Assembly: GCA_002269645.1 (NCBI GenBank)
Contig: NIVC01001938.1
Span: 62,001 to 126,000, forward strand
Direction of reading: 5' to 3'
Source of the DNA: Macrostomum lignano
Taxonomy: Eukaryota
Length of the DNA: 64,000 nt
Position numbers and translations under genes: made by a program. The stretch's first letter is position 1, and every line of letters begins with the position of its first letter. The notes beneath the pieces are model-generated. The model was given only the letters and a program-made list of their open reading frames with translations. It was not told the origin of the DNA and ran no database searches. Below are positions 28,262 through 64,000 of this stretch, in pieces.

Positions 28262-28310
28262 ATAGTTTGACCTGCAGACTAAATTTAGTATGCAATCTGG
28301 ATGGATTCGG

Positions 28311-38883: not shown

Positions 38884-41800
38884 CGAGTGTATGTCTGTCT
38901 GTCTGTCTGTCTTTTCCCGTTGAAAACGTTACGGTGACAAGAATCGCTAAAGAGTCATTGCAAACAACTCAGTAGTGACTCTAACGACTCTGGGGCAACT
39001 CTTGAGACCTTCACGACTCAAACGACTGTATGCGACGTAGAAGCGACTTGTTGCATAATTAAAGAGTCACGAAAAAGTTGTCCAAGAGTCGCTGTGTTAA
39101 CGCTTAACTTTCTACTAACTCAAGTAGACTAAATGGAGTTGTTATAAATGCAAAGTGCGACACGTCGTTTTAGAGACGTGAGTCACTTTTTTCCTATTCT
39201 CGTACCTGTAATCAAACAGCTCTGGGGCGACGCAAGTGACAGACGCTTCTTAGCCTGGGTACCGTTTTCATCGGTTCTGTGTGTTTGCCTGTCTGCTGGC
39301 TGGCTGGCTGTCTGTTTGCCTGCCTGTCGGTCTGGAAATCGCCTTTGAATTACGATTCCTTCTTTTTCTGCGCCTCACTTCTCTATCTCCAAACGTATTT
39401 CGTCTTGCTCCCTTCTCTCACATCTCCATTCTCTTTACCTCCCATCTCTCCCTGTATGATGGAATAAGCGCCAGTTGAAAAAGCTAGTAGTACATACAAA
39501 CTTAAAGCTTCTTAAACTTCTTGAGTGAGAATCAAGTCGCCAGAAGGTCGGATTCTTACCATATGCGCCATGCATATTCTTAAACACTTAAGCACTTAAG
39601 TGTCTTAAGCACTCAGTCCTCATCCTAACGGCATCGGTAGCCTTCAACAGGTGGCACCAGGTGACTATGGATACCCTCAACTATAGTGTCTTAAGCACTC
39701 AGTCCTCATCCTAACGGCATCGGTAGCCTTCAACAGGTGGCACCAGGTGACTATGGATACCCTCAACTATAGTGTCTTAAGCACTCAGTCCTCATCCTAA
39801 CGGCATCGGTAGCCTTCAACAGGTGGCACCAGGTGACTATGGATACCCTCAACTATAGTGTCTTAAGCACTCAGTCCTCATCCTAACGGCATCGGTAGCC
39901 TTCAACAGGTGGCACCAGGTGACTATGGATACCCTCAACTATAGTGTCTTAAGCACTCCGTCCTCATCCTAACGGCATCGGTAGCCTTCAACAGGTGGCA
40001 CCAGGTGACTATGGATACCCTCAACTATAGTGTCTTAAGCACTCCGTCCTCATCCTAACGGCATCGGTAGCCTTCAACAGGTGGCACCAGGTGACTATGA
40101 ATACCCTCAACTATAGTGTCTTAAGCACTCAGTCCTCATCCTAACGGCATCGGTAGTCTTCAACAGGTGGCACCAGGTGACTATGGATACCCTCAACTAT
40201 AGTGTCTTAAGCACTCAGTCCTCATCCTAACGGCATCGGTAGTCTTCAACAGGTGGCACCACAAGTTGTAGCAATGACTCATTAGCTAATTGACTTGACT
40301 TCTGTTCTTTAATTAGTCATCTCTGCTAATTTTTTGCAATGCGATACGATTCTTAGCCACCCTGTGTTGCGAAGTGATGTGATATTATGATAGAAATTTC
40401 ACTGCTGTCTTATCTACAAGCTAACTTAACTGTATAGTTTCACAGTAATAGCCCTCTTATTACACTCTTACCCTTGCGTGGTTTAGACCGGAACTCGCTA
40501 GTATCTTTGCGCGCATTTTGTGTTATTGCACATCAGTTTACGCGCGCGCTTATTTTGCTGCGTGTGTACGTGTATATCATGCACGCTTACTTCATTGAGA
40601 CACTTAAAAATGCGGGTTTACTATATTGAGACACTTCAAATTGCACGCTTACTACATTGAGACACACTTCAAATTGCACGCTTACTTCATTGAGACACAC
40701 TTCAAATTGCACGCTTACTACATTGAGACACACTTCAAATTGCACGCTTACTACATTGAGACACACTTCAAATTGCACGCTTACTACATTGAGACACACT
40801 TCAAATTGCACGCTTACTTCATTGAGACACTTCAAACTGCACGTTTACTTCATTGAGACACTTGAAAATTCGGGCTTACTTCATTGAGACACACTTCAAA
40901 TTGCACGCTTACTTCATTAAGACACACTTCAAGTTGCACGCTTACTTCATTGAGACACGCTTCATAATGCGCGCTTGTGTCACTGAGACTAACTTCAAAA
41001 TTCAAGCTTACTTCATTGAGACACTTGAAAATGCCGGCTTACTTCATTGAGACACACTTCAAATTGCACGCTTACTTCATTGAGACACACTTCAAATTGC
41101 ACGCTTACTTCATTGAGACACTTGAAAATTCGGGCTTACTTCATTGAGACACACTTCAAATTGCACGCTTACTTCATTAAGACACACTTCAAGTTGCACG
41201 CTTACTTCATTGAGACACTTGAAAATTCGGGCTTACTTCATTGAGACACACTTCAAATTGCACGCTTACTTCATTGAGACACTTCAAACTGCACGTTTAC
41301 TTCATTGAGACACTTGAAAATGCGGGCTTACTTCATTGAGACACACTTCAAATTGCACGCTTACTTCATTGAGACACACTTCAAATTGCACGCTTACTTC
41401 ATTAAGACACACTTCAAGTTGCACGCTTACTTCATTGAGACACTTGAAAATTCGGGCTTACTTCATTGAGACACACTTCAAATTGCACGCTTACTTCATT
41501 GAGACACTTCAAACTGCACGTTTACTTCATTGAGACACTTGAAAATTCGGGCTTACTTCATTGAGACACACTTCAAATTGCACGCTTACTTCATTAAGAC
41601 ACACTTCAAGTTGCACGCTTACTTCATTGAGACACGCTTCATAATGCGCGCTTGTGTCACTGAGACTAACTTCAAAATTCAAGCTTACTTCATTGAGACA
41701 CTTCAAGTGCGCGCTTACTCTACTTTTCCCTCCTTGATCCCAGGCCTCGGCCGGCATAGAACTGTGGATCGAATGCGTGGCGGCGCACACTATGGACAAG

Positions 41801-42052: not shown

Positions 42053-42169
42053 CCTGTTGTCGTTTTCTGTTTAGCTCGCTAAGTTTATGAGTTGGCTGGC
42101 AAAGGTTGATTGGCTCCCTCATACAGTAGCTTTGGCGCCCCCTGCCCCTGTCACCCCCTCAAGTGCAAT

Positions 42170-43030
42170 GGCGCCCCCATCAGTTACGAAATTGCGCCTC
42201 AATATATTGAAATGGGGCCGCCGCCCCCATCAATCGAAATAGCGCCCCCATAAATTGAAATGGCGCCCCACCAATTGAAATGGCGCCCCAACAATTGAAA
42301 TGGCGCCCCCATCAATTGAAATAGCGCCCCAATCAATTGAAATAGCTCCCCCACCAATTGAAATAGCGCCCCCATCAATTGAAATGGCGCCCCCACCAAT
42401 TGAAATGGCGCCCCACCAATTGAAATGGCGCCCCACCAATCGAAATAGCGCCCCCATTAATTGAAATGGCGCCCCAATCAACTGAAATGGCGCCCCACCA
42501 ATTGAAATGGCGCCCCATCAATCGAAATGGCGCCCCCACCAATTAAAAAGGCGCCCTATCAATTGAAATGGCGCCCCCACCAATTGAAATGGCGCCCCCA
42601 CCAGTTGAAATGGCGCCCCCACCAATTGAAAAGGCGCCCCATCAATTGAAATGGCGCCCCATCAATTGAAATGGCGCCCCACCAATTGAAATGGCGCCCC
42701 ACCAATCGAAATGGCGCCCCCATCAATTGAAATGGCGCCCCACCAATTGAAATGGCGCCCCATCAATTGAAATGGCGCCCCAATCAACTGAAATGGCGCC
42801 CCACCAATTGAAATGGCGCCCCATCAATTGAAATGGCGCCCCACCAATCGAAATAGCGCCCCCATTAATTGAAATGGCGCCCCAATCAACTGAAATGGCG
42901 CCCCAATCAATTGAAATGGCGCCCCAATCAATTGAAATGGCGCCCCAATCAATTGAAATGGCGCCCCAATCAATTGAAATGGCGCCCCATCAATTGAAAT
43001 GGCGCCCCATCAATTAAGATGGCGCCTCAA
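42170..43030. repeat. 20-21-bp minisatellite downstream of COG7
   Basis: Unit aattgaaatggcgcccca(cc/tc). Confidence 0.95.
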
Positions 43031-45039
43031 TAAACTGAAATGGTGCCTCCCCCCTCAGTTTAAATAGCTACCCAATGTACCCTCAGCATAAATTAGAAAG
43101 TCAGAAAAGACAGTAATCTAGGTTTTAATGCAAATATACTAAATGTTCATATTTCTAAACTAGCCTTTTCTGCACCTTCCCTCAGCCTTTAGTTTCTGTC
43201 TCTGTTCCTATGTAAACATGTAAACATGGGTTTGGGCTATTATTGACAGTTGGCACCAGTGTTTACGCAAGCAGCCAAGTTCAACTGTGGGACCGGAAGT
43301 AAACCAGCACTGCAGATCAACATTCCTGTAATATTTGCAAGTTTATTACTTTTTTCTGGGTAAATAGTATGATATGTTAGATCCTTAAGTTGCGTTATGA
43401 ATATTATTGCTTAGCTTACTATAATAAATTAAAACCATATTTGTTGGCTAGCTGTGTTTCAACAAGACGATAAATTGAAATTTAATTTTTATTTATCACC
43501 ACGATAATTAGTTGTAGTTATGCTCAGTTCAATGTATAGCCATAGAATTTTTATTTGTATTATATGCACTTTTCTATATTATATATATATGCCTCCTTTT
43601 CTATGCAATACAAAAATACCCTACAGCTGCCGTGTTAACCCCCAACCCAAAATACGGTCGCGAATAGAGAATTCGGGGCAATTTTAAGTGGAAGTGCCCA
43701 CTTTATACTATGAGTAAATATCGCTGCAACCCAAGGGTTTGTGAGAGAGAGAGAGAGAGAGAGTTGTGAGCTCAAACTTACCTTACTTCTCTTCAACTTC
43801 AGTACCTATCTATGCCAAAAGGCATTTGGCTGCAATATTGACAATTCAATGGTTTCTGACTTGAGGCTTGACTGCCCGCTTAAGGCTCGCGTATATTCCC
43901 TGCTCAATTTTTGCTATGGATATATTGAATTCCACTATCTTATCCGTGGTTTCCCGGTTGCTTTAGTAATTTATTCTGATTGTTAGGGATCAAATTATAA
44001 AACTCTCTAACTCCAACTGGGTTACTAAAAACTTGGCTATTTTAAATACAGGATACAAATGTACCCTAATGTACTTTTAGTGCGCCGGTCATTTTAGCAC
44101 ATTTTTGCACAGTCATTAAACAGAATCAGAGTAAAGGTTCAGATCAGAGTCAGGTCCGCTGTACACGGAATTCTTCGAATTATGAGAAACAACCACATGT
44201 TTCAAATGAACCCTAGCATGTGCACATACTCAACAAAATTGAAACACTGAAAAACTCTAGTCAGTGTCAGTTTAACCTGACTAGGCCTCGCTCCTGACCT
44301 GATGATGGGACAGTCAGCTTCGTAAGAGTCGTCTCCCTTCCCCCACTTACTAGTTAAGACTGCTGCTTTTAATTTTTTAGATTAAAAGTTTATTTTTTTA
44401 AACGTTTTTTTCATTAAGGATGTGGTCTACAATTTTTTGCCAAGAACAACTTATTTTATGAAGATTCGACAGTTAAACAATGATAACACTAAACGATGAA
44501 CACGTTAAATGGGTCTCTGCAGATCTTAAAAAAAAAATCCGTTGAAATCATTCATTTTCGCGCGCCGCATTTCTGAAGAGTGGCACGCTTCTCTATTGCA
44601 GCCAGTCTTCTTTTAATATCAAAAGTGTGACAAATATGATGCGCGGTAGCTTAACGACTAAAATCTTGAGAGGTCATTCACAAGTTCACCTCTCTGCCAG
44701 ATGCTTAGGTCTCTAGGTCGAATGATGATTTTCCATTTTTCTTAGGCCTAAAAACTATATGTTGCTCTATCAGTTTCCTCTGCACTATAATATACTTCGG
44801 GGCCCTTCACTAAAAAAGTAGTGTGCACGCGCACGCATTTCGGAGTCATAGACATTGATTGATTGACCATTCTGTGTAAGTTCTGTGGTCTAAGCTAGAC
44901 TGAATAATTTGACTTAAGTCAGCTTCAAATAGGTCTCAATTACTTCATTAAGATCTGTAACGATACTTCAACTTAAATTCGTTTGAAGATATTCAACCTA
45001 TGACTAATTCTCTGCAACTTTGCAGCTCTCGCCCAACCC

Positions 45040-46182
45040 ATGGCTACAAATCCTTCCAACGCGGCGGCGGCAAAGCTGGTCGCAAAGCGTCAAAAAGCCG
45101 AGAAAGCTGCACTGCGCCGCATTCGAAAGTGCATGCAGCCGCGCGAGTGCTTAAAACACGTCGCCGTATTGCTGGACGATCGCATTGCCAATGACCAGCG
45201 GCTTGGCCCGTCGATAACCGGCTGTCTGAACGGGCAACAAGTTGTTCCATTAGACGCCGATGAACAGCGACTGTTGCCTCTGCCCGCTATTCGCTGGAGT
45301 AGAAACGTTCACGCGTTGGACCCGGCCGCGTTTGCCGATCTGGCTCACGACGCTTTGCCATCGTCGCTAGCTGCTGCTTCAGTAGAATTTGAAGAGCTCG
45401 AGTCCGATTCCTTGCTAATAATGGACGGTCGCCAATTAGTTGAATTGATTCAGCAGAAGCGGCAGAGTGGATTGAGCACATTAGTGTTTCCCGAGCAGCT
45501 TGTCAGCACTAATCGCTGGTCGCCCAGTCTTGTCGTTTATGATCTGGAGCTTCACATAACCCAATCCAGCCGAGCCGCTGAAGGCAACGCTCTGCGTGCA
45601 AAGATGCTGGCCAATTCCGATAAGCCAGCAGCGCCGCCAGCTAAGAAGCCCAAAGCTAGCACAGCTGATCAGGTCACTCGACTCCAGTGCGAGGAAGCGT
45701 TCGTCTCGCTGCAGCTGACTCGCGGTGTCACTGTACGCGTGCTAGAGGACCCAGTTCAACTGGGCAAACTGGTCTACTGTCTGACCAAAGCCATTGCCGA
45801 GCGGCCTTTCAAAGCTGCCAGACTTGAATCCGTCTTCTCGTTTCACGTTGGCGCCGGTGTTGGCGCCGGCTGCCGGCTGGAAGAGAGCGCGGACGGAGGC
45901 TCGCCAGCTGGCATTGACGAGCTGTGGCGCTGCCAGCTGCAGTGTTTTCCTTTGGTTACGGCCGAGGTGGCTCGGACAATAATGCGAGCCTACCCGTCGC
46001 CTGGCCACTTGATTCGGGCCTACGCCGGGTGCGCCAGCGCCGAGGAGGCCGTCAAACTTGTGGCCGATCTGCAGGTGTGCAAAGGCACCGGGCCGCTTAG
46101 CACTGCCAGGCGACTGGGACCGGAATTGGGGAAACGTATTTACGCGTTTTACTCGTCTCGCGATCCGAATCAGGTGCTTTAG
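45040..46182 (+). CDS. EME1: Crossover junction endonuclease subunit EME1 (MUS81 partner), single coding exon
   Basis: PRECLKHVAVLLD, EEAFVSLQL, LTKAIAERPFK, FSFH, WRCQLQ, AYPSPGHLIRAY and RRLGPELGKRIY match the recalled human EME1 ERCC4/HhH region. Confidence 0.92.
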   Translation: MATNPSNAAAAKLVAKRQKAEKAALRRIRKCMQPRECLKHVAVLLDDRIANDQRLGPSITGCLNGQQVVPLDADEQRLLPLPAIRWSRNVHALDPAAFADLAHDALPSSLAAASVEFEELESDSLLIMDGRQLVELIQQKRQSGLSTLVFPEQLVSTNRWSPSLVVYDLELHITQSSRAAEGNALRAKMLANSDKPAAPPAKKPKASTADQVTRLQCEEAFVSLQLTRGVTVRVLEDPVQLGKLVYCLTKAIAERPFKAARLESVFSFHVGAGVGAGCRLEESADGGSPAGIDELWRCQLQCFPLVTAEVARTIMRAYPSPGHLIRAYAGCASAEEAVKLVADLQVCKGTGPLSTARRLGPELGKRIYAFYSSRDPNQVL

Positions 46183-46516: not shown

Positions 46517-47793
46517 TTAAAAGTTCAGGTTGCAATTTATAATAGGTAAAATTGAAGAAATTTTCAAAGCACTAGAAGTTAGCATGTTATGCGTGTAGCT
46601 CAAATGCATAAACCTGTGGACCGTGTAGGAACCATTCGGAATCTGTTTAGTCTCGAAATTTGTGCGGTTCAGTCGCCTGCAATGGTCCTGTTTCGGCTTA
46701 GACAGCTTTTCTGGTGCTAGACAGAGCTTCTTTAGTCTGTCAGGAATCCATGCCACGTCCCAGATGGGCTGGAAGGCGTCTGCCTCGGCCAGCATGTTGC
46801 CGCACCAGTCGGCAGGTCGGTCGCTCTTCTTCAGAGCCGTGTACTTCTCGTAGAATGTGTGCAGCATTCTGGGTCCCGTGACGTGCACCGCATCGTTATG
46901 AACTCTCTTGGTGTTACTGGCCCAATTCTGCTCGAACCATTGCGGCCAGTTTGTTAGCACGAAGCTCAGGAAGCTGTGATTCGCTCGGCTCATCATCACC
47001 GCATTCGAAATCAGTGCCGGAAGATTGAACGTGAAGACTGCGTGCTCAGTAGGCTCCTGACTCCACACGGCTGACTCACAGTCGAAGTTCGGAGTCAGCC
47101 CCACTCCCTGAAGCTGCGACGGTCTTAGCAGCGGTGTCGGATCTCGAAGCAGCTCCACATCCGTGTCGATGTACAGACCGCCGACGTGGTGCAGCACGAC
47201 CAGACGGCCGATGTCCGATCGTTCCAGCCCGTTGACCAGCTTGCGGTAGCTTTGAACAAGGTACGGATAGTGCTTCGAGATGAGCTCGGAGATCTGCTTG
47301 TCGTCCCAGTGCATGAAGTGCCAGGCCTGGATTCGGCTACCGTTACTCAGCCGTGCCCAGGAGCGCACAATGGGAACCAGCTTGGCAGGCACTCGGCCGT
47401 CTTTGCTGGTCCAGTGCACCAGCGCCGGGATGGAGTCCGGGAACTGGGAGGGCAGCTCGCTGCAACTTGAATTCTTTAAGGCTGACGAATCGTTTTGCCA
47501 TTCTGATTGAGTATTTGTAGTTGGCCTTTTATTTAGATAGATTATCAGCTGTATCGCAATCGTCAGTATTATTAGAAGCGTCAGTTTTCGTCTATTCGCT
47601 AAAAATATATAGATGGTAATCACAGGTATAGTTGCAGTTAAGGGCGTTGCCAGAGAGAGGGGTCTATACGGTCAATTGAAGGCTTGTTCTAGCCACCTTT
47701 TACTGCAGCCTTCTTTAACAATACTTCTCGACCTATTACATGTATAACCCGACTATTCCACTAATCACAGACACAGCTATACTAACTTGCCAT
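46517..47793 (-). CDS. GT32-family (DXD sugar-binding) glycosyltransferase with N-terminal signal anchor. Main exon 47598-46517; putative micro-exon 47793-47787
   Basis: IPALVHWT, ERSDIGRL and GGLYIDTDV (DXD) motifs; hydrophobic LTLLIILTIAIQLIIYL. The listed ORF starts at GTG. An ATG GCA A|gttagt micro-exon with a ttttag acceptor at 47600-47599 gives MATNRRK in frame (inference). Confidence 0.82.
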
Positions 47794-48825: not shown

Positions 48826-49919
48826 TTTAAATTGCATCGTCAATTATTGAATCAAAGAAAAAATCGGAAACAATCATCGCATTCTTGCTGACAGAGCAAA
48901 GGTTTCTGATCAGGCAGTTAAAGCGGAAGCTTTCAATGTAATGCATGGCACATGCTCGACGCATTCTAATCTTCGATGAGCTGATAGGGAAAACAACTCA
49001 CAGCTGTGTTGTTTCGTCATAAGCAATAAGCAAGCTATGAAAATATCTTTTCTTAGCCCAGTGGAATCTCTCGTATTAGGCACTTAAAGATTGAATGATT
49101 CCTAGATGATCACAAAAGCGGAAATGATATCTGCACTCGCACTCAGATGTTAATCAATTCGTTCGAAATGTAAACTGCAAGTTTAGATGTCTACTTCTAG
49201 GTTTGCCGGTCCCTCAGTTGAGCTTCTCGGTGAGAAATTTGCGTGCTGTCCATGTTCAACCTTACTTAATACTGTGTACACTCCTTATTGTAAGGCTTCT
49301 CCCTGTGACATATTTGCCACGAACGCACGCCCACTCTCTATATTGAAATTGCAGTAATGGGTTAAATGGAGCAAACGCGTCAGTAACTTGATAGTCTATG
49401 GCTGTCTTCCATGCATTTAAATGGGGCAAAGTCTTCTGTAAAACGAGCGAGGTTTGAGATTGCGAGAAAACCGACTTGGCGCTCAGGCCTGACAATCGAT
49501 ATATTTTATAAGCCGAAGATTGAGGTGGGGTTTGGGTGTTGCACACGCACGGGCGCAACCGCACGTTGCAAACAACCACCCCCCCATACACAAGCACGTA
49601 CAAATATGACTACGAACAACATTAGAATATATATAGGTGCATAGAATGCTCACACTTCAGTAGAGCTTTTAAATGGGGCAGAGTCGTCAGTTAGATGGTT
49701 TTGAAAAGAATCACTACTGCTACTACTATTAGTATAATCGATGAATTGATTGATTGACTGCTTTACCTTTCAAAATATAAGTATTTACCTAAAATACTAA
49801 GTGTGGATTTAATTTTATTGAGCGGCGGCAGCAGCGATGGAGTCGAACTGGACAGAAGCCTGTACATATGATTTGCCAGTTATTAATTGGATCACCGCAT
49901 TGTGTGCTGTCGTAACAGA

Positions 49920-51177
49920 ATGTCTCCTTGGCAAGACGAGTTTACTGACAGCGACGACGAGCGCATCGCAGCTGCATTAGATGAGTACGAGCGAGAAAGA
50001 GCCGCTGCAGCCCAGAATACTGCAGGCCCCGTGTCTTCTGTCCGCAAGCGAGAAGTTTCCGCCGATGATATCCCACCTGCTGGTCAGCCGGCACAGAAAA
50101 GGGGGCGGAACGCCACGACGGACGACGATGAAGCCGACGAGTTCAGTGTGCTGGCGTTTAGTAGTGGAGCACCGCGGCAGCCACCACAGCCGACACTGCC
50201 GTCACAGTCAACTATGCAGCAACAGTCATCCGCCTCCTACGAGCTTGATGAGATGGACTCGGACGACCGGGCGGCCCTCAACGCCATGCTCGACTACGAG
50301 GCGTCCATGAGCCCTGCCGTGCCGCAGCAAAAACCGCCGCCGGAACCTGCTGCAGCTGTCGCCAACCCTGCCGAGCTCTCAACGCTGCCGAAACCGCCAG
50401 AAGTAGCCGCCGAGCTGCATCGTCAACAGCAGCAGCAACAGCAGCAACAGCAACAGCAGACTGAATGGCAGCGAACGCAGCAGCGGGAGCCGTACTCGCA
50501 AGCAATCTCACGTTGGTCAATGCAGACCATGCCTCTGGCGAGCCAACGACGGAGCTGGAACCGGCCTGAAGCTCGAGCCGCCGAGGAGCTTCGACCGGAC
50601 GAACTGTCCTCGTTAAGCTACAGCCCGTCGTCATCTGCTGCACAGTTAATCCGAATGCTACAGCGCTCGGAGTCTGGCAGTACCATCAGCAGCAGCAGCA
50701 GCAGCAGCAGCTCCAGCTCCCAACGCGGCAGAGGCGCAGCGGCAAACGGTCGACGCAGAGGCGTCGGCGTCCGGCAAATCGGCCAGAATCCGCTGCTGCA
50801 GGCCGACGCGTTCCGCCAACAGTTCACGGTCACTCGATCAGCTAGCCGTTCGCTACCGCTGTATGGTGCCGCTCCGGTACAGCGGCTGGTTGAGGACACC
50901 GGAGTACTAACTGTGCGGCGCTATCTGCACGTCATCCACATCGATAATTTGCGCTTCATCGGTGAGTAGTAGTAGACTGCTCTTCTCTCTGCTTAACTTT
51001 ATACTTATGCATGCAACGCCACAACAATCCCATGTACAGGCCGTGCAAAGGTGTACTTGGGCGAGGCGCTCGAGCCGCACTGCACTGAGTTGCTATTGGC
51101 GTCCAGTCCGGAACTTAACGTCGGCATGGACGAGTCGTGTGACCGCCGGCTAGTGGAGGACCCGCTGGCTGTCGACG

Positions 51178-51208
<31 letters not shown>

Positions 51209-52192
51209 TCGCACCTTGTCGGGCTACATTCGGCTTGTGACCAACACCGCCGGCTGGCACGTTTACGAGCTGCTGCACAGACTGCTGCCGGGATCCGAGG
51301 TGGGCCGAGGTTTCGTGCTCAACAACCTCACAACGCTGACAGTCTGCGGTGTGCGTTCCCCTGATACGATTGTGCGAAGTCTCACGCAGCACGACGGATA
51401 CTCCTGGTCGGCATTGGCGTATCTCAATGCAGCATGCTGGTGCAGGCAACGCGCTGGGTGCTCTCCTACCCGCGGACGGCCAGCCTGCCAAATAATACCG
51501 ATGGCTTTCTGCTAGCTCACCAGCAGATGCGGGCGGCACTCCTTACGATGTTTAAGGATATCCAGCGCCAGCGTCGTATCCGTCAGGAGCGCCTCCAACG
51601 CTGCTCGGCTTGCTCAGAAGCACTGAAGCAAACAATGCGACACCTGAAGCGCCGTCAGTGCCCGCTCCGGGTGGCCGTGTGCAATGCCCTACTCCGGACA
51701 TCAGGTGTCGTGTACCTTTATGGGCCATCAGGAGTCGGAAAAACCACGGCCGTTGAGCGCCACTGGGGCCCAGAGCGAGTATTCTGCCCAACAATCAAGC
51801 CTTTCGATGGCAACGACTTCATCTTTGATGGGCTCGACATCAACAGGCACTCTGTCATCTTCATTGACGAAATTCGGCCCCAATATTTTGAAGGGAGTAG
51901 TGACCTAGAAGCGACGCTACTGCGGCTGTTGAATGGGAACTCGTTTCTAATCAACACGAAGCATCAATCGCATGTGTACGTCGACTGGGCGCAAAGACTC
52001 ATAGTAGTCCTGGCCGGGCACGCTTCGCCTGAAGAATACAGTCCGGATTTTCAGCGCCGGCTGCGGAACGAGAATAATGTCGCTATAGAAATGGATCACG
52101 ACATTGAAGAATGTCATGGGGAGTGCCAGCCAGTACCTGATGGCGCCTACGCTGCTGCCGCCGACGATGAGCCCGACAATGGCATGTACTGA
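49920..52192 (+). pseudogene. Rep-like protein (degenerate HUH region plus SF3 helicase) with long low-complexity N-terminus. Exons 49920-50961 and 51040-52192; frameshift near 51425-51434
   Basis: Walker A YLYGPSGVGKT (51722-51745), Walker B VIFIDE and Arg-finger-like FQRRL. A 78-nt GT-AG intron (gtgagt...tacag) joins the 49887 and 51051 ORFs in frame. HUH-like positions RRYLHVIH, TLSGYIRL and RSPDTIVRSLTQHD lack the catalytic His and Tyr. Confidence 0.68.
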
Positions 52193-52633
52193 TCTTTTGA
52201 TCGATCGATCGATCGATTGATTAATGTTCTGTTTCTTGACTAATTACTTGGCTAGTACTACTACTATTAGAGACTCTGGCCTAATAACGGTTCTTTGTTT
52301 AATAATCAATTCATTTATTCAGCTAGCCAGCCAGCCAGCTATTCCCCCCTCCCCCAATGTTTTTGTCGCATAGTTTAAAGCCTTCTTAAGCCTATTGTTC
52401 CTGTCTATTGACTATACAGTTTTCCCTTGACTAAAAACTGCAGGTATGAAGATTTCTTACTTTGATAATAATAATAATCCACAGCAATGGACAGCAGCGA
52501 TGAGCAGCGGTAGATTAACAACAACGGCGGCAGAAGAAAAAGGACGCTAAAATTCAAATGGCGTGCCAAAGCAGAAAGCTTAGTCTCAATAATAAAATTG
52601 ATATACCTATCAAGAAGAAAGAAGAAGAAATTA

Positions 52634-53355
52634 CTATAGCATTTTGCAGTCAAGTTTGAACTGCGGGCATTCAAATTAGACAAGAAGGGAAGAGCCAAAT
52701 TTCAGAATCCGTCCCCAAGTCAAGCAGAACTTTATGTCTGTGGCACAAACTGAAACACACTGACGGGCACTCAATTTAGACAACGGGCATTCAAATTAGA
52801 CAAGCAGCGGAAAGTCTATGTGTGCCAGAGAGAAAGACCATGGACAATCCGATTCGTCGCTATGCAAGAATTTCCAGAGAGAAGCGTGGCCTCATTATTG
52901 GGGCATGCCAACGTGGTGACTCTGTGGCTGAAATTGCCAACATGTTGGATGTCAAGAGATCATCAGTGTACAACATCTGGAACAAGTTTGTTCAGGATGG
53001 CCAGCGATACGCGCTACCAAGGGGAGGAGCCAGGCACCGTCGAATGAATCCTGCAATGAAGGACCATCTGGCCGCCTTGTTGAATGCCAACCCTCTGATG
53101 ACACTCGGGCAAATGCGGGAATCGCTTCAAATGCGGGTTCACAGAATGGTTGTCTGACAACAGACGCAACACGATCTTGAATTGCCCAGCCAATGCGCCT
53201 GAGAACTTGTCTAATTTGAATGCCCCTTGTCTAAATTGAGTGCCCACCAGTGTGATTTTGTCTAGGCCATAGATAGCATTTGTGCCAGCAGTGAGATCTG
53301 GTCAAGCGTCTAATTTGAATGCCCGCAGTTCAAACTTGACTGCAAAATGCTATAG
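52634..53355 (+). mobile_element. Internally deleted IS630/Tc1-like transposon retaining the HTH region
   Basis: Perfect 48-bp inverted repeat (ctatagcattttgcagtcaagtttgaactgcgggcattcaaattagac) with inner repeated gggca(t/c)tcaa(a/t)ttagacaa motifs at both ends. ORF 52838-53157 MDNPIRRY...SVAEIANMLDVKRSSVYNIWNKF is a Tc1-type HTH with no DDE domain. Confidence 0.85.
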
Positions 53356-54319
53356 CTAGCTGCTGTTAGGCGGCTTCGTTCAACGACTATAATCTTCCTT
53401 GTCTTTACAGTCCAATACATTAATAGTTTATGGCTTTAACTTTGATTACAACTATAAATAACTGATACATTTACATAATAAATAATAATCTTATATCTAA
53501 AGCTGAGTGGATCGATCGACCGGCCGGGTTTAACGCGTATCTCCTCCTAAACGGCTGGCAACTCAAATGCGGGACTTATATATATCAATGCAGAATTTTC
53601 CTACGCAACAAATAGGCTATTTTAATGTTGAAATTTTCAAAATTAAGTCTGTTAAAAAAGCAGAAAACTGTTTTCTTAACCTTCTTTGGCCACATTGCCT
53701 CTCCAGTGGAGGGGTAGTGGCATAATTGTAAAAACAACTACCCCAACCTCCTCCCGCGGGTCGCTGTGTTTTGGAGGGGTGGGTGACGCGTGTTCTGGGT
53801 TCAATGCTAATAAAACCCCGCGTGTTGGGGGTGCCGTAAAATTTAATGATTCCCCCGGAATAGGGGGGGGGGGGTTGGTTTGGGCTGAGTGTACATAGCA
53901 ATGTACTGTGTAAACAGATAGAAAAGGACTGTGTCGAGATTCAATTGGTTTTATTATCGGCGTCTTTCAAAAGGCTGTGTATTAGCTGGGCAGCTAAATT
54001 CAATGAATAAACTTGCGAGCGGGAAGTTCAAACGCAAACTGTTCCTTGAGTTTTAAGCTTTGAGAGGAGAGAATTTGTATTGCTGGAAAGATCTTGCAAC
54101 GCTGAGTTTGGGGATATAAGTTATTTGTTTTAAATATGAAAACAAAAAGCACAGCATTGAAAAAACGATTTCCATACTTTTAAACTTTCTGCCAAGATTG
54201 TAGTTGGGGGGGAAGGTTGCGTACACAAATTCAAGCCAGCTATCATTTGAGTAATTTTAGTAATGGAGGAGGCGGGTGATAAATTTCAATTGTTTTGATT
54301 ATCGGCGCTTTCAGTCCGT

Positions 54320-55990
54320 CAGATAAGAGAGTAGAGAGAAGAGAGTAGAGAGAAGAGAGTTTTCAAGGAGAAGAGAGGATAGAAAGATGATAGAAAAGAC
54401 AGTAGATATGAGAGCTGAGAGATTAAAGACGAGTCGACGACAGAGGGGAGAGAAGAGTGGAGTAAGGCAAGAATGATGAAGAGGGAAAGTGAAGAGAAGA
54501 GAATGTGGAGGGAAGATAGGGGGGGGGGAAGGAAAAATGAGAGATCAAAGGAGGGAGGAAAGATGGGGAGGAGAGAGGAGGGATAAGAGAGTACAGAGGA
54601 GATAGAAGAGAGAGGAGAGATGAGACAGGAGACGGTAGAGAGGAGAGGGGAAAGATGAGAGATGAAAAAGAAGAGGGTAAGAGAGAAAATAGGAGTATGA
54701 GAAATGAGAGCAGAGAGAAGAGACGAGAGAGAAAAGAGAAGAGAGAGAGGGCAGGGTAGAGGAGAGGCGATAGATAAGCGAGTAGAGATGAGAGATGGAA
54801 GAGAAGAGGAGAGATAAGAGAGAATTGAGAGAAGACAGGAGAGAAGACGGGAGAGAGAGAAGCGAGAAGAGAAGAGAGAGAGGACTCAGGAGAGAGATGA
54901 GAAAAGAAATGAGAGAGCAAAGGGGAAAGATGAGAGAATAGAGATAAGAAAAAAGAGATAAGAGCGCAGAGAGGAGAGATGAGAGATGGGAGGTGATTGA
55001 TAAGAAAGTAAGAGTAGAGATGAGAGAGGAGATGAGAGCAGAGAGAAGAGATTAGATAAAGGAGCAAAGAGGAGAGAGGAGACAGGAGAGAGTCTCAGTC
55101 TGGACCTTGCAGTCAATTTTTGCAAACAGGGAAAACATGCTATGATATTTCAGAGGTTTTATGGAGGATTTTTTAATTTTTTTGACGTATACCCAGACAA
55201 GTAAAAAGCATATTTTATAGACTTCAGTTTCATAGTCTTGAGTGACTGAAATTTGATAGAGATAATATTTTTTTAATTGATGGATTGTAGCTTGAAGGAG
55301 ATGATACACGCTGGATTGCAGTTTAACGGAGATGATTTTGATGATATCTGTTTCATAGAGAGGATGAAATGGCTAAATGAAAGGGAATAGAGAAAAGAGA
55401 AAAGGAAAGAGTGGATAAAATATTAGATGAAAGAGAACATGAAAAGAGAGAATCAAAAGGGACAGATTAGAGAAAAGAAAAAGAGAATAAAGGCGAGAGA
55501 AGAAATGAGGGAATTGAGAGGAGAGAGGAGAGGGGTAAGAGAGGAGAAAGAGGAGACAGGAGGGAGTAGAGCCAAAAGACGAGAGAGAAGAGATAAAAGA
55601 GTAAAGATGAGGGGAGAGAGAGGAGAGAGAAGCGAGAGGATAAGGGAGAGAGGAGAGGGGAGAAAGTAGAAAGATGAGAGAGCAGAGAGGAGATAAAGGA
55701 GAGGAGAGTGAAGAGATAAAAGAGAAGAGAGGAAAAAGTAGAGGAGAAAGTAGTGAGGAGAAAGAAGAGAGTAGATATGAGAGTGCAGAAAGGAGAGATA
55801 AGAGAGTAGAGATGAGAGATAAGAGATGAGATGAGAAATGATTGATAAACGAGCAGATAAGAGCAGAGAGGAGATAGGAGAGATTAGAGATGAGAGAGCA
55901 AAGAGGAGAGAGGGACAGACGAGAGTCTCAATCTGGACAATGGCAGGCAGTCAATTTTTGCAAACAGGTAAAACAACATGATTTTTGGGG
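54320..55990. repeat. Two long homopurine (GA-rich) tracts, each followed by the same ~90-bp tail
   Basis: Tracts ~54320-55090 and ~55380-55925; tail gagagtctca(g/a)tctggac...gcagtcaatttttgcaaacagg at 55088 and 55921. Confidence 0.85.
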
Positions 55991-56373
55991 GGTTAATAGA
56001 GGATTTGGAGAGGATTTGGACGATGGGATTCGTGTCATTGGATTCAGCTGATGGATTTCAGGGAATGAAATTCTGGCGATGGGAGTTCTATCCCCTTACT
56101 CCGCCAACGGAGGAGTTGGCCTCGTATAATATAATAATAACATCGGAAAAACTGATCACGCAATATCAAAAGATGAAAAAAATTATAAACAAGGGCTGGC
56201 TAACTAACGCATGTCCATCGTACAGTTCATATTCATAGTGCGCGCATAATTCCCTAAAATAATAGCTAAATGGATCGAATCCCTGATAATTTATCCCTGA
56301 TCCCTGATAACGTACGTGCGCGCTTTGTACGCTATCGTACTAATAGTAATTAAACACACTGGCGGCGGATCTT

Positions 56374-56674
56374 TTAACTCTGCCGCTGAACCTTGGCGAC
56401 AGGCTGCGAAACAACTCCCAAGCCTCCATCCTGGCCGCCGTCACAACTTGCTGAGTTTTGCCTCCGCCTCCGCCGCTGCTTGCTTCTGCTGCCGCCGCCG
56501 CCGCCGCCGTGCACTGCAGCATCAGCGCGCTGCGTCGGCCGAATCTCGCCGCCGCCGCCGCCGCTGTCTTTGGCACCACCGCTGTCGGCCAGCAATGCCG
56601 ATCGGACAGCCAGCGCCGAGGAAATTGCGGCAGAAGCAGAAGCAGAAGAATTCGCCGACTCAGACGCTGCTGCG

Positions 56675-56706
<32 letters not shown>

Positions 56707-57412
56707 TGGTTTAGTAGGATGGCCGTTGCCAACTGTCTGGCGCGAGCGGATGACGGCACCCATTTGCAGCGCCCTGTGCGCGTTATAGCCGTCGTTTCGG
56801 CATATAACCGCCGGCGAGGTGCCATGGGCGCGGGCAAATGCGTGCAGCTGCGCCGGCTCCATCGCCAGGACGACGCTGCATATTGTGCGGCGCCAGTCAG
56901 TCGCAACATAATGCCGGCCGAGCAGCCTATCGCCTCCAGTGCTGATCATGCGGCTGAATGCGCTCTCGCTGTAGACGAGGCCATAAATATCCAAAAAAAT
57001 TGTGGACACCTCGGGCGGAGGAACAGTGACTCCGCGCGCAACGAGGCTCGGCCGGATGTAGGCGTCGTGCAGGCGCAGCAGGGCGTCGCAGAAGAGGTCG
57101 GGCAGCACCATTGTGGCTGGCTGGCCAGTATGCCCGGCCTTGTGCGGAACTTCGGTCGGCGGCAGCACCAGGTGCGAGTGCCCAACGAGATCTTCTTCAG
57201 TGGCACTGATGCTGGTGTCGCGAAACAGCTGGTCCCGGTCGTCCGCCGCCCTGTGTTGCACTGCACGGTTAAGCAGATGCTGCCGCCGCAGATAAATCCA
57301 CGGCAATAGACTAATCGGCTGTTCCACGCTGCAGAAGAAAACGAACTCCTGCACAATGCGCCGGACAAATACCATGGCGCACAGCTGATTGTCGTCGTCG
57401 CTGCGAGACGAG

Positions 57413-57450
<38 letters not shown>

Positions 57451-59649
57451 GTCTCCAGTTTGCGGCAGCGCCTCCCAACTGTGCTCAAGCAGCATATTAA
57501 AAAACCGGCCGCGCCGGTTAAAAATATTGCACACTTCGCTACGTTTAATATAGCTGGCCATATAGCCCATCTGCCGACCATGGTGGCCCAGCTTATGGAG
57601 CTGCTCCTGGAGTGAGCGTACAGCGGCGAACTCACCTTTGGCTTCGTCGATCAGCGAAGACATGCGCACAACTGCAAACTGCCTAGCAGCGAGTGGGTTG
57701 TCGCTCATCAGCTGCTGCTGAGCTCGCCAGCCGGCCTGCTCGGCATCCCCTCTGTCGTCGGCATCGGCGGCGGCGGCGGCACAAAACAACTCTGATTGGC
57801 GCAGTCCGATCGCGTCGAGCACCTGCTCAAGACAGCGATTGCCGCGCAATGTGAGCCAACCCTCCAGGGAGAGCAGGATGGTAACTATCTCCTGGCACTT
57901 GCGGCCCGCCGTTGAAGGCGCCAGCTTCAACTGATTGGTGACCACCTCCAAGCCAAAGACGCCAGCAATGAGGAAAGGCCGCAGCACTAGGTCGGCCAGA
58001 GTGAGCTGCTTGCGCTGCCACAGCCGCTCCAGTGTTGCCTCAACGGAATCGCGGATCTTTCCCCAGCGGCGTTTGTGGCTTTAGTTGGCGGAGACGCGCA
58101 TCTTAGTTGGCGCCGTCCACCAGAGCACGGACAGTCGGTTCAGCGTGGCCTCAATCGACGGCCGGTCGCCGAGCGACACTTTCCTGGCTGGGTGCTCCTT
58201 GCTGAAGTGGCGAAAGACGGAGGCGGAGCTGGCAGACTGACGCTCGCCATGGCGTCGCCGCTGCTGGCACTGGGCGCTGCCGACGAGGTCTCCTCCTCAA
58301 CATTGTCAGCAGCAGCAGCAGCAGCAGAAGAAGAATGAGGCTTCAGCGCCGCCCGGCGCTGCTTTGGTGGCGTGGCAGGTAGTCTGACGAGCAGTTGTTG
58401 GCCATTGCTGATGTTGGCAGACGAGCTGCTGGGTCGCTCCAGCGCGATATCAGCTGTCTGCAACGACAATGGCGAATGACTGGCCAATGGCGGCACGACT
58501 GTCGGCGCAGCTGCAACAGCAGCAGCAGCAGCAGCAGCAGTAGAACTGTCTGGCTGCAGCATCTGCGGCTCATCGTCAGCTTCCTCCTGCTCCTCAACCG
58601 TCGGGCAAAGCAGCAGGCGGCGGCGGCGATCGTTTGATGAGAAGCAGGCAGCGCGTCCCATTGCATCTGCAGCGACCATCATATCGATGATCGCTGTATT
58701 ATCCTCTTCAAAGATGACATCAGCAGTCTCCGCCGCTACCGATGCCGATGCATCATCGGGGTCCGCTGCCGGAGGTACTGACTGCGCGGCGGAATCGATT
58801 GAACCCTGGCAGCGATGGGCCCGAAGCCGACACCGCGCCTCTCCGCAGACGGGGCAGACGGCGATCACTTCCAATCGATGGCTGGCTTTGGTGCTGCGGC
58901 TGCACTTGATCGCCAACCAAACAATGTTTCTCCGCTGCTTGCCGTCTGCGGCAGACCATTGTGCCTCCGTAGGGCGCATGCGCTCTGGCACATCACTCAG
59001 CTGGAAGCTCTGCAGGACCTCTCTCTCATGGCGATTTATATAGTGGCGCTTCAAGTTCGCACCAGGTACAGTCTCGCCACACACAGGGGGGTCTTTCTCG
59101 AAAGCAACTTACGATCGACCATAGACGTAAGTTGGGTAAGCTACACTTACGGGTTGCTCGAAGGGCTCGCAAGTTAGCTATGCGTAAGATTGATCGCAAC
59201 TTTACGAGTTCGTAACTTTGCGCAAAAGACTGTTTCTCGAAACGTTCGTATGTCTATGGTCTTTCGTAAGGTTGATCTTAACCCTACGACTGCTCGGTAT
59301 CAGTCGTAAGACGCACTTAAGCACTAATCGCATAGTACGTGAAGCTTTAGTCAAGCCAAGTCAAGTTAAACTTTATCGAAGGTGGGTCTTTCTCGAAAGC
59401 AACTTACGATAGACTAAGTAAAGATATTTGCAGATTTATGACCATAGACATGCAACTTTTCGTTTCAGATTCGACTTACGAACAGCGTAAGCCACGCAAA
59501 ATCTAAGTGAGTTTTGAGAAAGCGTCTTACGAGCAAACTTACGCTACACGTAAATTTCTTTCTTACGATCTAACTTACCATAGAACTTATGTGAGTTTCG
59601 ATAAACACCCCCCTGGGCATTCCGAATTTCGGCGGCATTTCGAAGCCAT
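56374..59649 (-). pseudogene. Zinc-finger plus divergent tyrosine-recombinase-like gene, disrupted by a MITE, a frameshift and an in-frame TAA (58081-58083)
   Basis: Reconstructed N-terminus MASKCRRNSEC|PVCGETVPGANLKRHYINRH (C2H2-like) and a second CPVC...HRC motif. The C-terminal ORF has LAPSTA (core-binding-like), HKAGHTGQPATMVL, YIRP, FLDIYG, ATDWRRT (HxxR-equivalent) and ARAHGTSPAVICRNDGY (GTS...Y). The first catalytic Arg position reads EQP. Confidence 0.62.
59087..59612. mobile_element. PIF/Harbinger-like MITE inserted in the zinc-finger codons
   Basis: Imperfect TIRs gggggtctttctcgaaa / tttcgataaacaccccc; 3-bp flanks cag (59084-59086) and ctg (59613-59615). Internal second copy of the left end near 59384. 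Excision restores the reading frame. Confidence 0.75.
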
Positions 59650-62032
59650 TTCCTCCTAAGTAAATACACTCAGCAACATTTAAAACGCAACACTCTAACT
59701 AGAAGAAAAATTTTTCTTGTATATATTTTCTAATTATTAAGCGCCAATACAATTTTTTCTACACTACTACTACCCAAGTGCCCTCCCCATCAACCTCCAT
59801 CAAACCTTTAGCACCCAACCCCATATTTCTTAAGCTGAAGAAGCACCCATCCCCCAGAATTTTTCTTTAATTTTGCAGCAATCGCATGAGTGCATCGGAC
59901 GAATGCAATGTTTGTATGACTAGGTTCTGTCTGGCTGGCTGGCTGGCTGTTTGTCGAGATTTGAGGTTTCTGCCATAAACTATAGCTATCTTTTAACCCA
60001 AGCCTACTGGCTAGCTGATTCCTTTGCTTCAGTAGTTGTCCTTTGTTTGGATAGTTCGGCCATAGACTAAAGTACATGGCTGCGGATTCTTGCTCGGGAG
60101 GTTAGACCATAAACTACTTTTTGGCGGACAGGTTTCTCGCTCGGCTAAAGGCGGAGCTACTCTCTTTCAACTATCTCGCTCCTTTATTCTGCAGTGCTTT
60201 AGCTCTGGTCGTAAGCTTTTGTTCTTCTAACACCACCCTTTGTTTGAGGTAAGTTTTCAGTACTGCTTTGACTATATTACAGGCCTGTAACTTCTTACAG
60301 GCCCCAAGCGTCATTAGTTGAATTATTTGAGTAGCTATTATCTATCTATCTCTTATATTTGATCGGAGGCCCCTTCCATGCTGCATGCAATTTTCTTATT
60401 TTCTTGGCTTGCAAGAACTCCTGCCGAGATTGTCTCCATTTTTATTCAATACCGTCCGTTATATCCTTGCACGTCGATTTAGTCTTACAAGCTAGAGGGG
60501 AGCAGCTCAGCGGTAAACAGCTTTGACTCCAGCACCACGAATCATTCATTTGGGGCTTGTGCAATGACTCAAGCATTCAGTCATCACCCCGACGCTGTCG
60601 GCACCTTAAAGGAGACGAAAACATGACTAAGGACACCCAAAAGAGATAATTTTTTAGCCATTTTAGTAACATTTATTACTTGATCTTCAGTCCACACAGA
60701 AATTCGATACTTTTTTGTTATTTTTTCTCTTGGCAAAAATTTGGTTCAATTTACAGTTCAGTTAACTAATTGCGTCATCACGTCGAGTGATGATAGACTG
60801 TTTGTGAGCCTTAGCTGAGAATGACCAGGAGTTAAAGTTTGCCCATTATTGATGATTGATCAGTGACATCAAAGACATTCGCAAAAGGATGTCCATAGTC
60901 GCGTGGTGTAATCTGTTGAAGGTGCCAATGGCGTCTGAGTGATGACGGAATGCTTGAGAGACTAGCTGAGAACGTCCAGCAGTCGAGTTTTGCCCACTGT
61001 CGAGGCTTGATCAGCGAAACTAGAGAAATCCGCATCAGGGTGTCCATAGTCACCTGGTGCCACCTGTTGAAGGTCCAGAAGCTCCGCCTGGGTGAAGGCT
61101 AGTGACCAAAGAAGTCAGTGCTGATGCAGACACATGTGATCGACGTGCTGATGAAGTTTGGAGGCTTGGCAAGGCTGCACTGAGGCGCAGTGCTGATTGG
61201 CGCACAGGGGTGTACTGAATACACTAGCGCTTATGGAAACAATCCGACTTTTTGGCAAAATCGTAGAATATCTCAACGGTCCAGAGGGCTGGCGACTTTA
61301 TTCTTGTTTGAAAAGGTGCGCAACAGAAAGTTAGCCCGTGTTTTTTTGTGTGTCTGCGTTGCTCCGTTCCGGCGCAGCCAAGAAAATTGTCAGGGGGGGG
61401 GATTTTTCCCGTCTGGCAGTTTTGTGCACCTTACGACAGGATTATTACGAAGTACCATGCACCGGCGGTTTTTTTAACGATCCAACGATCCAGCGAACCC
61501 TTCAATCGAACCGCATCGCATACCAGTGCCCATACGAGAGGTGGAGGCCCTAATGTATGGCACCACCCCAGCAGAAGTGCATTCAGTAGGTGAACAATAC
61601 TCAACCGTACATCGAGGTGTCTAGAGCTGGTCGACACCTTTGGCTGAATGACAACAAACTGACATTCAGACAACCAACTGACCCCTCTCTCTCTCTCTCT
61701 CTCTCTTCATTACAACGACTGTGCGTCGGTGTGTGCATTAAACTGTATGTGTTCACTGCTCACTGTTCGTTCATTCACTGCTCACTGTTCGTTCATTCAC
61801 TGCTAAATGGATTCCAAATAAACAGTGTTGTCGGATTCAGCGCGCAGGAATGTCGTTCCCGCACTCGTTCGCGTACCGGAATGCAACTGTCTATGGTAAA
61901 AACGCCATTGAAATCAAAGAGAAAATCAGTGCAGGAATGATGTGCGATTCTTGCACTATAAAGGAAACGGAACATTTATTATATAGTATATTTAGTTCAT
62001 TTAAATTTACTTTGGTTCACTTTGGTTTAAGT

Positions 62033-62606: not shown

Positions 62607-64000
62607 TTACTCGAAAATAAACTGCACAACATTCGTTTCGCCGTTTGCCAAAATCTTCATCCGCTTAGTGGGGGCTGCTACAAGTGTGGTGGTCGATTCT
62701 TCAACAACCAGTGACTTCTTGACAGTTGACATTGACGCTGATCCGCACGGGTCGGTAGTCGCAACAGCCCTTGTAGGAGCGTCGCTCAGGGCGCACGGGT
62801 CGGTAGTTGTAACAGCCCTTGCAGGAGCTTCGCTCAATGTAGAACTTGGTGCCGGCATAGTTCCAGCTAGAGCGACTGTCAGCTGATCACTCATCCCTGC
62901 CATGATCGAGTCCCTCTTCTTGCCTCTCCGGATGTATCGTTCTACCGACGCGCTATTCTGTGAATAGAGGTGGTGTTTAATAAATTCCTTGTCCATGTGT
63001 CAATAAACTTACTAAGAATAAAGAATTGCTCACCTTGTGACCTGTCACCTTCGCAATTTTTTCGACAGAAAAGCCAGCTTCATGCAGCTCCGTAACAACT
63101 GTAGGTCGCACACAATGCGGAGTGTACAGCTTGGACAGGTTAGCATTCGAAGAGATCTTCTTGAGCAACGGCCCCAAAGTGTTGATTCCAACTGGTACTT
63201 TGGTGTACCAGATGCCATCCGCATTCACTCGTGGTTTCGGACGCAGAAAGAAGTCCTCCTGATTCCAACCCGGCACGGCAGTAATTTTCGACAAATAAAG
63301 CTGGAAGGCCTGAACTGGACAGTGCCTTGACTCCGGCTTGGCCACCATCAAGGCCTGTTTATTGTCGTCGCAGAGTCGCATGTCACTCAAGCCTTTTACA
63401 TTCTTTGAGGTGCTGCCTTGCAACTCGATCGCCATAGCTCCGTTTGATAGGGCCTTCTCTCGGAATGAACGAACAGTGAGACCTCGTAGCCATTCTCTGC
63501 CGCGATTGCCGAAATAAAATAACACATTGAAATATACCTCTTCTTGCAAACGTGTTGGAGTGCTTCTGTCGAAGTAAGAAGCAAGCTTGACAAGGTCGTC
63601 CGACTCAATGGCTTCGTAATGCTGCACTCGACCACCGGACTTCAAATACGCATTGCAAACATTCTTCACCATCAAATTCGCGCTATGAAAAGCCTCGTGA
63701 GCGATGATATTGAGGCCACGTAATTTCATAAAGTACCTGAACAGTGCGGCTCGAATTCCTACGATTGTATTCGGCGAATAGAAGCTGCCGTCTGACTTAC
63801 GCAGAGTCGCATAGAAGTAGCGGACCCATTTGGCAATTTATTCCACCGAAGCAGTCGCGTAATCCACTTTTACATTATTCTCCGCCAACCAGGCCGTCAA
63901 GCGGTTGATCACAGCTTTCTCCTTAGAGACAGTCGAATGACATTCGTTGTCTCGTTCCAGTTGAGCGGCCAGACTTTCCAATTCGTCAAGGTTACACAAG
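62607..64000 (-). mobile_element. Crypton-type (DUF3504-like) tyrosine recombinase gene, 5' end outside the window; intron 63033-62958; one premature TAA at 63840-63838
   Basis: Catalytic set R (FGNRGRE), K (SKN), HxxR (TPHCVR), H (TGHK) and Y (SVERY, after splicing a 76-nt gtgagc...cag intron). CPVQAFQLYLSK and VGINTL are Crypton-like. Upstream in-frame YFYATLRKSDGSFYSPNTI. Confidence 0.9.

Follow-up and report, generated by a model that had tools for sequence, protein, structure and literature searches.

The question raised by this locus is whether two broken genes that lie tail to tail in the genome of the flatworm Macrostomum lignano are the relics of one integrated DNA element, or of two unrelated sequences that came to be neighbours. 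The genes, designated A and B, fall within a window of 64,000 bp (positions 62,001 to 126,000 of contig NIVC01001938.1, assembly GCA_002269645.1), to whose numbering positions refer unless another locus is named. A preliminary description of the window had proposed a new self-replicating element, in which a tyrosine recombinase excises a circle and a nuclease-dead Rep helicase amplifies it. The locus is dead and fixed, left over from foreign or mobile DNA and without present function, and both protein families are essentially undescribed. As to a joint origin, the segment is read here, tentatively and with a confidence a little short of even, as the fossil of one old integration of a recombinase-plus-helicase DNA element in the M. 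lignano lineage.

Genes A and B were found to be convergent, as previously described, with 4181 bp between their facing stop codons in the open reading frame (ORF) map. The ORF pieces of both genes were analysed one by one, and the existence of homologs, for gene A a protein with invariant motifs and for gene B a set of eight, demonstrated that these are genuine genes rather than chance ORFs. The earlier statement that no capsid, DDE transposase or polymerase ORF lies between the two genes was confirmed; neither these nor a reverse transcriptase ORF was found between or beside them, no capsid or packaging gene was found between 47 and 64 kb, and no other copy of gene A or gene B was found within the window.

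Gene A is composed of a long low-complexity N-terminal part, a middle part and a C-terminal ATPase domain of superfamily 3 (SF3) helicase type, the latter encoded by a final ORF of 252 codons which is intact in the window copy. In this ORF (P0001) the Walker A motif reads GPSGVGKT and Walker B VIFIDE, and motif C includes an Asn. None of the three varies in P0002, which was the sole homolog detected among 5.8 billion proteins, is 51% identical and remains open up to the end of its 919-bp contig. Against Pfam, gene A yielded P-loop matches only: RNA_helicase (PF00910) scored 17.5 bits, below the cut-off of 21.5 (E = 0.006), and there was no match to Viral_Rep or Parvo_NS1. An AlphaFold (AF2) model built from the two sequences had a core with a predicted local distance difference test (pLDDT) score of 70-80, a mean of 57 and low confidence outside the core. 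When the model was compared with the PDB using Foldseek, adeno-associated virus 2 (AAV2) Rep68/Rep40 ranked at the top, followed by the Rep ATPase of porcine circovirus 2 (PCV2; template modelling (TM) score 0.63 on the target, 21% identity); E1 of bovine papillomavirus (BPV) was also present and generic AAA+ proteins (HslU, RuvB) followed closely behind. A fold search of BFVD was more uniform, the named entries in the top 50 being nearly all Reps from CRESS DNA viruses (circular, Rep-encoding and single-stranded) or parvovirus NS1 proteins. The protein stops ~30 residues past the ATPase core and has no room for the lid domain of classical AAA+ proteins; a compact ATPase without this lid fits the SF3 helicases. 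At the level of fold, the modelling thus supports the proposed identity of the C-terminal domain of gene A as an SF3, Rep/NS1-like ATPase.

The word Rep had also implied an HUH nuclease, considered inactive in the preliminary description. Approximately 500 residues, largely of low complexity, precede the helicase domain, and the two upstream pieces of gene A gave no Pfam or PDB sequence match. No nuclease domain, dead or alive, was therefore detectable upstream of the ATPase, and this part of the description was not upheld.

Gene B encodes zinc fingers and a low-complexity linker, then a helical domain placed as a core-binding domain would be, a catalytic domain resembling that of tyrosine recombinases and a tail rich in Ala, Gly and Arg. 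The most complete relative is P0015 (A0A1I8G604, 1084 amino acids, M. lignano), which has two complete zinc fingers, a long linker, the helical domain and the conserved C-terminal domain; the N-terminal piece of gene B in the window matches its zinc-finger region with E = 8e-4. Sequence comparison with Pfam and the PDB, with single sequences and with profiles, yielded no recombinase match for gene B, and neither the window pieces, nor nine homologs, nor P0015 matched Phage_integrase or DUF3504 in Pfam at E <= 1. An AF2 model from nine sequences had a mean pLDDT of 70, with values of 80-93 across most of the C-terminal domain. All of the top ten PDB structures retrieved with this model by Foldseek were tyrosine recombinases, including XerA, XerH, the Staphylococcus aureus integrase and lambda Int, with probabilities of 0.13-0.99 (0.87-0.99 for the first eight), E-values of 0.03-2.5 and TM scores of 0.17-0.45.

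The conserved residues of the family agree with such a fold. All aligned members covering the column retain the catalytic Lys of the beta-hairpin loop, and an Arg-Arg pair, containing the second catalytic Arg, opens a helix and is invariant in alignment A5; a Thr-Ser helix comes after it, and the last helix starts just past the conserved Tyr position. The Lys, Arg-Arg and Tyr sit at places that the recombinase fold expects. For the first catalytic Arg, an Arg-rich stretch follows the first helices and no single Arg column is common to all members. The nucleophile column holds Tyr in all five other members that cover it (P0004, P0005, P0009, P0010 and P0015) and a residue other than Tyr in the window copy. 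Taken together with the zinc-finger motifs, the model points to gene B being what had been proposed, a zinc-finger protein with a tyrosine-recombinase-like fold.

The window copy of gene B is broken by one 5' truncation within the first zinc finger, at least one frame change, one in-frame stop, which falls within the stretch alignable to P0015, and the non-Tyr residue. Its cut end is abutted by an AT-rich repetitive sequence containing a 35-nt direct repeat (59085-59119 and 59380-59414), and no continuation of gene B was found upstream of that sequence.

The EME1 gene upstream of the pair served as an anchor; two paralogs of it lie elsewhere in the assembly, on other contigs, at loci L009 and L010. 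Both contain COG7 and EME1, then gene A (97.5% identity) and then gene B, in the order seen in the window. This identical arrangement indicates one syntenic position that was later duplicated, rather than three transpositions. The pair was accordingly seen at one locus in three duplicated copies with shared breaks and no terminal repeats, which does not bear out the mobility that had been ascribed to it.

The three copies also place the breaks in time. The in-frame stop and a frame change of gene B are common to the window and L010, and the one true frame change in the window copy of gene A, between the middle and helicase pieces, is common to the window and L009. Breaks that recur on independent contigs must be older than the duplication, and assembly error was ruled out as their source. 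A cluster of four stops in gene A had likewise been taken as decay. It lies in an AT-rich, in-frame interval of 78 nt with GT...AG ends that is kept in all three loci; the interval reads as an intron and its interpretation as decay was dropped. Of the decay that had been reported, the frame changes and the stop in gene B therefore stand, and the stop cluster in gene A does not.

The other two copies have degenerated further. L009 and L010 each have an extra stop inside the ATPase domain of gene A, and relative to the window contain five and six indel runs in this gene, of which three and four, respectively, are not multiples of three. Both have also lost a stretch of 771 bp in which gene B's catalytic half lies. 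Past this deletion the two loci enter different GC-rich sequences (18115-21155 in L009 and 19388-21155 in L010) with no match in the window; these sequences probably inserted separately and later, in one case at a trinucleotide tract. The ratio of non-synonymous to synonymous substitution rates (dN/dS) of gene A between copies was 0.4-0.8, a value based on 18-20 substitutions and indistinguishable from neutral. Genes A and B were already dead before the host locus was duplicated, and the two additional copies decayed after that. M. lignano has been described as neopolyploid (PMC10733133), and the three duplicated copies provide a dated record of decay and of subsequent insertions in such a genome.

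The spacer between the genes was also altered. A Tc1/mariner-type mini element in the window, a secondary insertion already recognized in the preliminary description, has an ORF of 111 amino acids with a helix-turn-helix (HTH) domain (52822-53157) and no DDE transposase, and is a non-autonomous derivative. It is missing from L009 and L010, both of which have a single TA at the clean empty site, and must therefore have inserted after the locus was duplicated. A further block of 2635 bp, private to the window, consists mostly of two GA-rich arrays of a 7-nt satellite (54321-55171 and 55501-56006), which form a duplicated unit of ~840 bp; over 54321-56006 the GC skew is about +0.68 and the AT skew about +0.4. 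This block may be either an insertion in the window or a deletion in the ancestor of L009 and L010. Altogether the other two copies lack about 3.35 kb of the spacer, and with both private blocks removed the older spacer between A and B measures about 830 bp.

Two features of composition had been held to unite the genes. The coding blocks of A and B have a GC content of 0.55-0.62 compared with about 0.42-0.44 in the surrounding DNA, and the genes themselves have values of 0.56-0.61, and of 0.60-0.75 at third codon positions (GC3). EME1 and COG7, host genes of this window, have corresponding values of 0.56-0.64 and 0.57-0.71. GC-rich codons are thus present and do not link the two genes, since host genes look alike; as a mark of common foreign origin they were ruled out. 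Trinucleotide tracts behave differently, as seven of the eight long CAG/GCN runs of the window fall within genes A and B, in agreement with the earlier description.

Relatives of both families are exceedingly rare. A full HMMER pass over 1.84 billion representative proteins recovered the eight true homologs of gene B, at 25-33% identity: four from Joint Genome Institute (JGI) co-assembly 3300040801, one from a Logan contig, one from a European Nucleotide Archive (ENA) contig and two UniRef fragments of M. lignano. P0015 was found in the 90% cluster of one of these fragments, and in all the family has seven UniRef entries in M. lignano, P0015 included. The M. lignano fragments P0006, P0007, P0012-P0014 and P0016 bear the source name 'Ras-GEF domain-containing protein'; the two that were scanned, P0006 and P0007, have no Ras-GEF match in Pfam, and the name looks like a misannotation. 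A further candidate, P0008, was rejected as a low-complexity/LPD23 false match. The word-indexed homolog search returned nothing for gene B, either whole or trimmed of low complexity, the untrimmed run giving 8000 low-complexity candidates.

The sole homolog of gene A, P0002, comes from the same JGI co-assembly as four of the six environmental gene B homologs, a collection that pools many brackish microbial-mat samples (PMC8605020). When the 3' flank of the environmental helicase contig was compared with the flanking sequences of the environmental contigs that carry gene B relatives, no overlap, which would have indicated linkage there, was found. Two of the gene B contigs, L005 (1064-1151) and L006 (1-607), have common ends, L005 being without ~466 nt that make up the catalytic coding part in L006; L005 looks like an internal-deletion variant of the sort seen in transposon families. 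P0015 and the alignments of the two families, helicase and gene B, were used to search 2.9 million IMG/VR contigs, and no relative of either family was detected. The JGI metagenome contigs gave no match for either family, even to known contigs, and evidently do not contain 3300040801. None of the relatives among the 5.8 and 1.84 billion proteins searched was traceable to prokaryotes.

The fold-level identities of the genes, their common position in three loci, the breaks that these loci share and the later insertions are the ground on which the origin of the pair has to be judged. Three observations speak for one element: the original distance between A and B was only about 0.83 kb, tail to tail; trinucleotide tracts are a habit that both genes share and that scarcely occurs elsewhere in the window; and, among the sequences searched, the sole relative of the helicase comes from the co-assembly that yielded most of the gene B relatives, both genes being orphans with very few relatives at all. 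The same three observations sit uneasily with the idea that A and B are chance neighbours, gene B being a dead single-gene transposon of Crypton style and gene A a relic of other descent, for instance an orphan gene or a helicase endogenised from a small DNA virus, the two having come to lie side by side in repeat-rich DNA before the duplication. This idea is nevertheless the main rival and a real possibility, if not a probable one. P0015, the six other M. lignano entries, L007 and L008 are members of the gene B family with no detectable helicase partner, and P0015 holds only zinc fingers and the recombinase-like domain. The environmental members are diversified and include the deletion variant L005, like families of single-gene transposons; no termini common to A and B were found; and CRESS-derived endogenous sequences have been suggested in other flatworm genomes (PMC10269781). 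As a source for gene A these sequences fit poorly, given that gene A has diverged much further than endogenous Reps of CRESS viruses or parvoviruses typically have and matches neither of their Pfam families.

Several results weigh against the single-element reading. The composition of A and B is that of the host genes, the E-values of the gene B fold matches are weak, and neither of the catalytic His (or His/Trp) positions is conserved in the family alignment. A comparison of the two flanks of the pair gave no terminal repeats, direct or inverted, other than chance matches of 21 nt or less; nor is there an empty site to set its bounds, because all three copies duplicate one insertion. In the window, its paralogous loci and the collections of proteins and environmental contigs searched, the pair was not encountered at any further, independent locus. 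Gene B relatives are present in M. lignano, in the Logan run and in the ENA assembly without a gene A relative detected there by a word-indexed search that could miss helicases below ~30% identity; an obligate pairing is thus not supported. The co-occurrence in 3300040801 may reflect a related meiofaunal animal under any hypothesis, and a canonical Crypton lies 3.5 kb away, which implies that recombinase elements are not rare here and makes chance adjacency less unlikely. The preliminary description had regarded independent occurrence of the homologs as the mark of a chance juxtaposition. What was found is half of this, gene B relatives without a helicase on the one hand and on the other a pair that is close and shares both tracts and a co-assembly, and an element of two genes is therefore only partly supported.

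It is improbable that A and B are, or were until recently, cellular or domesticated genes whose apparent breaks are introns or complexities of the gene model. Such genes would explain the host-like GC and GC3, the fixed, syntenic position and the intron-like interval conserved in all three loci, and the 252-amino-acid helicase ORF is an annotated protein in NCBI and UniRef. They would not be expected to have an in-frame stop where gene B aligns with P0015, a stop in the ATPase domain and a 771-bp deletion of gene B's catalytic half in the other copies, a dN/dS indistinguishable from neutral, and relatives almost absent from 5.8 billion proteins. Less probable still is that just the integrase and helicase genes survive from something larger and virus-like, for example a large DNA virus, a polinton-like virus or a virophage-like element. 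Recombinase and helicase modules are known in polinton-like viruses (PMC11296320, PMC5499653), and the flanks of the pair are eroded and rich in insertions, but no capsid, packaging ATPase, polymerase or protease ORF is present within 49-60 kb or the flanks, host genes begin 2.3 kb upstream of gene A, and neither gene has a relative in IMG/VR.

We infer the joint arrival of A and B, and with it the whole mechanism; that they formed a single element is unproven. If they did, the integrated unit would have been a compact DNA element of ~5.9 kb, later insertions excluded, comprising the two tail-to-tail genes. Gene B would have served as its integrase, a zinc-finger recombinase with a very divergent catalytic domain that, without long terminal repeats, linked a circular copy to the chromosome, by analogy with Cryptons, integrating plasmids and viruses. 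Gene A may have supplied a hexameric helicase of SF3 (Rep/NS1) type for replication of the free form. Even if the pairing is a matter of chance, the gene B family represents a recombinase-fold lineage that no curated sequence model recognizes, and the gene A family an SF3 helicase with almost no known relatives.

Table 1. Coordinates of the two genes, their predicted domains, the later insertions and the neighbouring genes in the window
Feature	Position	Strand	Remarks
Gene A, broken	49887..52192	+	Three ORF pieces; copies in L009 and L010
Predicted SF3-type (Rep/NS1-like) P-loop ATPase domain of gene A	51701..52093	+	Walker A, Walker B, motif C; fold matches
Tc1/mariner-type mini element	52634..53355		716-722 bp; 48-nt perfect inverted ends, TA duplication, HTH ORF
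Window-private spacer block, 2635 bp	53490..56124		Absent from L009 and L010
Gene B, broken	56374..59084	-	Two ORF pieces; homologs and alignments
Predicted tyrosine-recombinase-like catalytic domain of gene B	56716..57396	-	AF2 model and Foldseek
Helical N-terminal domain of gene B, core-binding-domain position	57397..58200	-	Homologous to P0015, P0003, P0011 and L003
Two Cys/His zinc-finger motifs of gene B	58809..59084	-	First finger without its first Cys; gene cut at 59084
AT-rich, internally repetitive sequence	59085..59600		Abuts cut 5' end of gene B
EME1/MUS81-type host gene	45028..46182	+	Anchor for retrieving two further locus copies
Glycosyltransferase ORF, 368 amino acids, single exon	46517..47623	-	DXD domain, Gly_transf_sug E = 2.5e-11
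Crypton-type tyrosine recombinase gene (neighbour, outside the pair)	62607..64000	-	DUF3504 E = 6.7e-10, Phage_integrase E = 7e-5

The host genes upstream of gene A are COG7, the EME1/MUS81-type gene and the glycosyltransferase ORF, which is the nearest and is missing from the genes called on the contig in the record. On the other side, the Crypton-type gene occupies at least two frames and continues past the end of the window; it showed no relation to the gene B family by BLASTP or hhalign. Other sequences of the window were recorded in passing. The COG7 region contains a tandem satellite of 86 bp (39599-40261), with many more units in L009 (3292-5533) and a single 37-nt match to the unit at 61037-61073, and further tandem arrays at 40580-41719 and 42154-43076, visible as ladders of offset BLAST matches when the paralogous loci were compared. 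A mariner remnant ORF with a Mos1-type HTH lies within the span of the COG7 gene (37382-37909, minus strand; HTH_48 E = 2.4e-11). Blocks of extreme strand skew at 10001-14000, 23001-24000 and 25001-31000 are probably satellites or low-complexity DNA; the AT skew reaches -0.71 at 23001-24000, and over the 10-14 kb interval the GC skew swings from +0.40 down to -0.52.

Among the known mobile elements of eukaryotes, Cryptons, DNA transposons whose sole product is a tyrosine recombinase, are similar to the gene B family in combining a protein of recombinase fold with an added DNA-binding module and no reverse transcriptase, in having no long terminal repeats that could be seen, and in a eukaryotic style of gene whose environmental relatives are diversified and partly decayed. 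They differ in that gene B matches neither DUF3504 nor Phage_integrase, while the true Crypton of the window matches both and hhalign found nothing between the two, and in that the gene B family has two N-terminal zinc fingers and does not conserve either catalytic His. By these sequence tests the recombinase of gene B falls outside the Crypton clade. A helicase gene, moreover, adjoins gene B, and no Crypton is known to carry one. DIRS-like retroelements differ from the pair, which has no reverse transcriptase ORF beside gene B and no terminal repeats.

Polinton-like viruses and virophage-like elements are integrating DNA of eukaryotes in which a tyrosine recombinase and a replicative helicase can occur together (PMC11296320, PMC5499653). 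At ~6 kb the pair is smaller than these elements, which measure 14-40 kb, and unlike them it has no capsid or packaging genes and no relatives in IMG/VR. The Reps and NS1 proteins of CRESS viruses and parvoviruses are closest to gene A, in its small ATPase with Walker A, Walker B and motif C and no C-terminal lid, and in its best fold matches (AAV Rep68/40, the PCV2 Rep ATPase and other Reps of both groups). Gene A is set apart from them by ~500 extra N-terminal residues, the intron-like interval, the lack of an HUH domain detectable upstream by Pfam or PDB sequence search, a PF00910 score below threshold and the absence of a capsid gene nearby.

In P4-type elements and archaeal integrative plasmids, a tyrosine integrase is coupled with an SF3 primase-helicase. 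The pair described here has an animal host, no primase domain that could be detected, no att-like repeats and no sequence relation to these prokaryotic integrating plasmids and satellite phages. The likeness is one of logic only: an integrase for moving into and out of the chromosome, with an SF3 helicase to replicate the free circle. On this analogy, A and B could together represent an unnamed integrative DNA element of animals, ~6 kb in length, without capsid or terminal repeats, with a very divergent zinc-finger recombinase that has neither classical His and a Rep-type SF3 helicase that copied the free form; living relatives of it might occur in the meiofauna of brackish mats. So full a description is doubtful, and would make the pair a eukaryotic counterpart of the prokaryotic integrase-plus-helicase plasmids. 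If A and B were one element, they would extend the DNA elements that recombinases mobilise in animals by a branch equipped with a helicase and provide a link in design from these elements to integrating plasmids and small DNA viruses.

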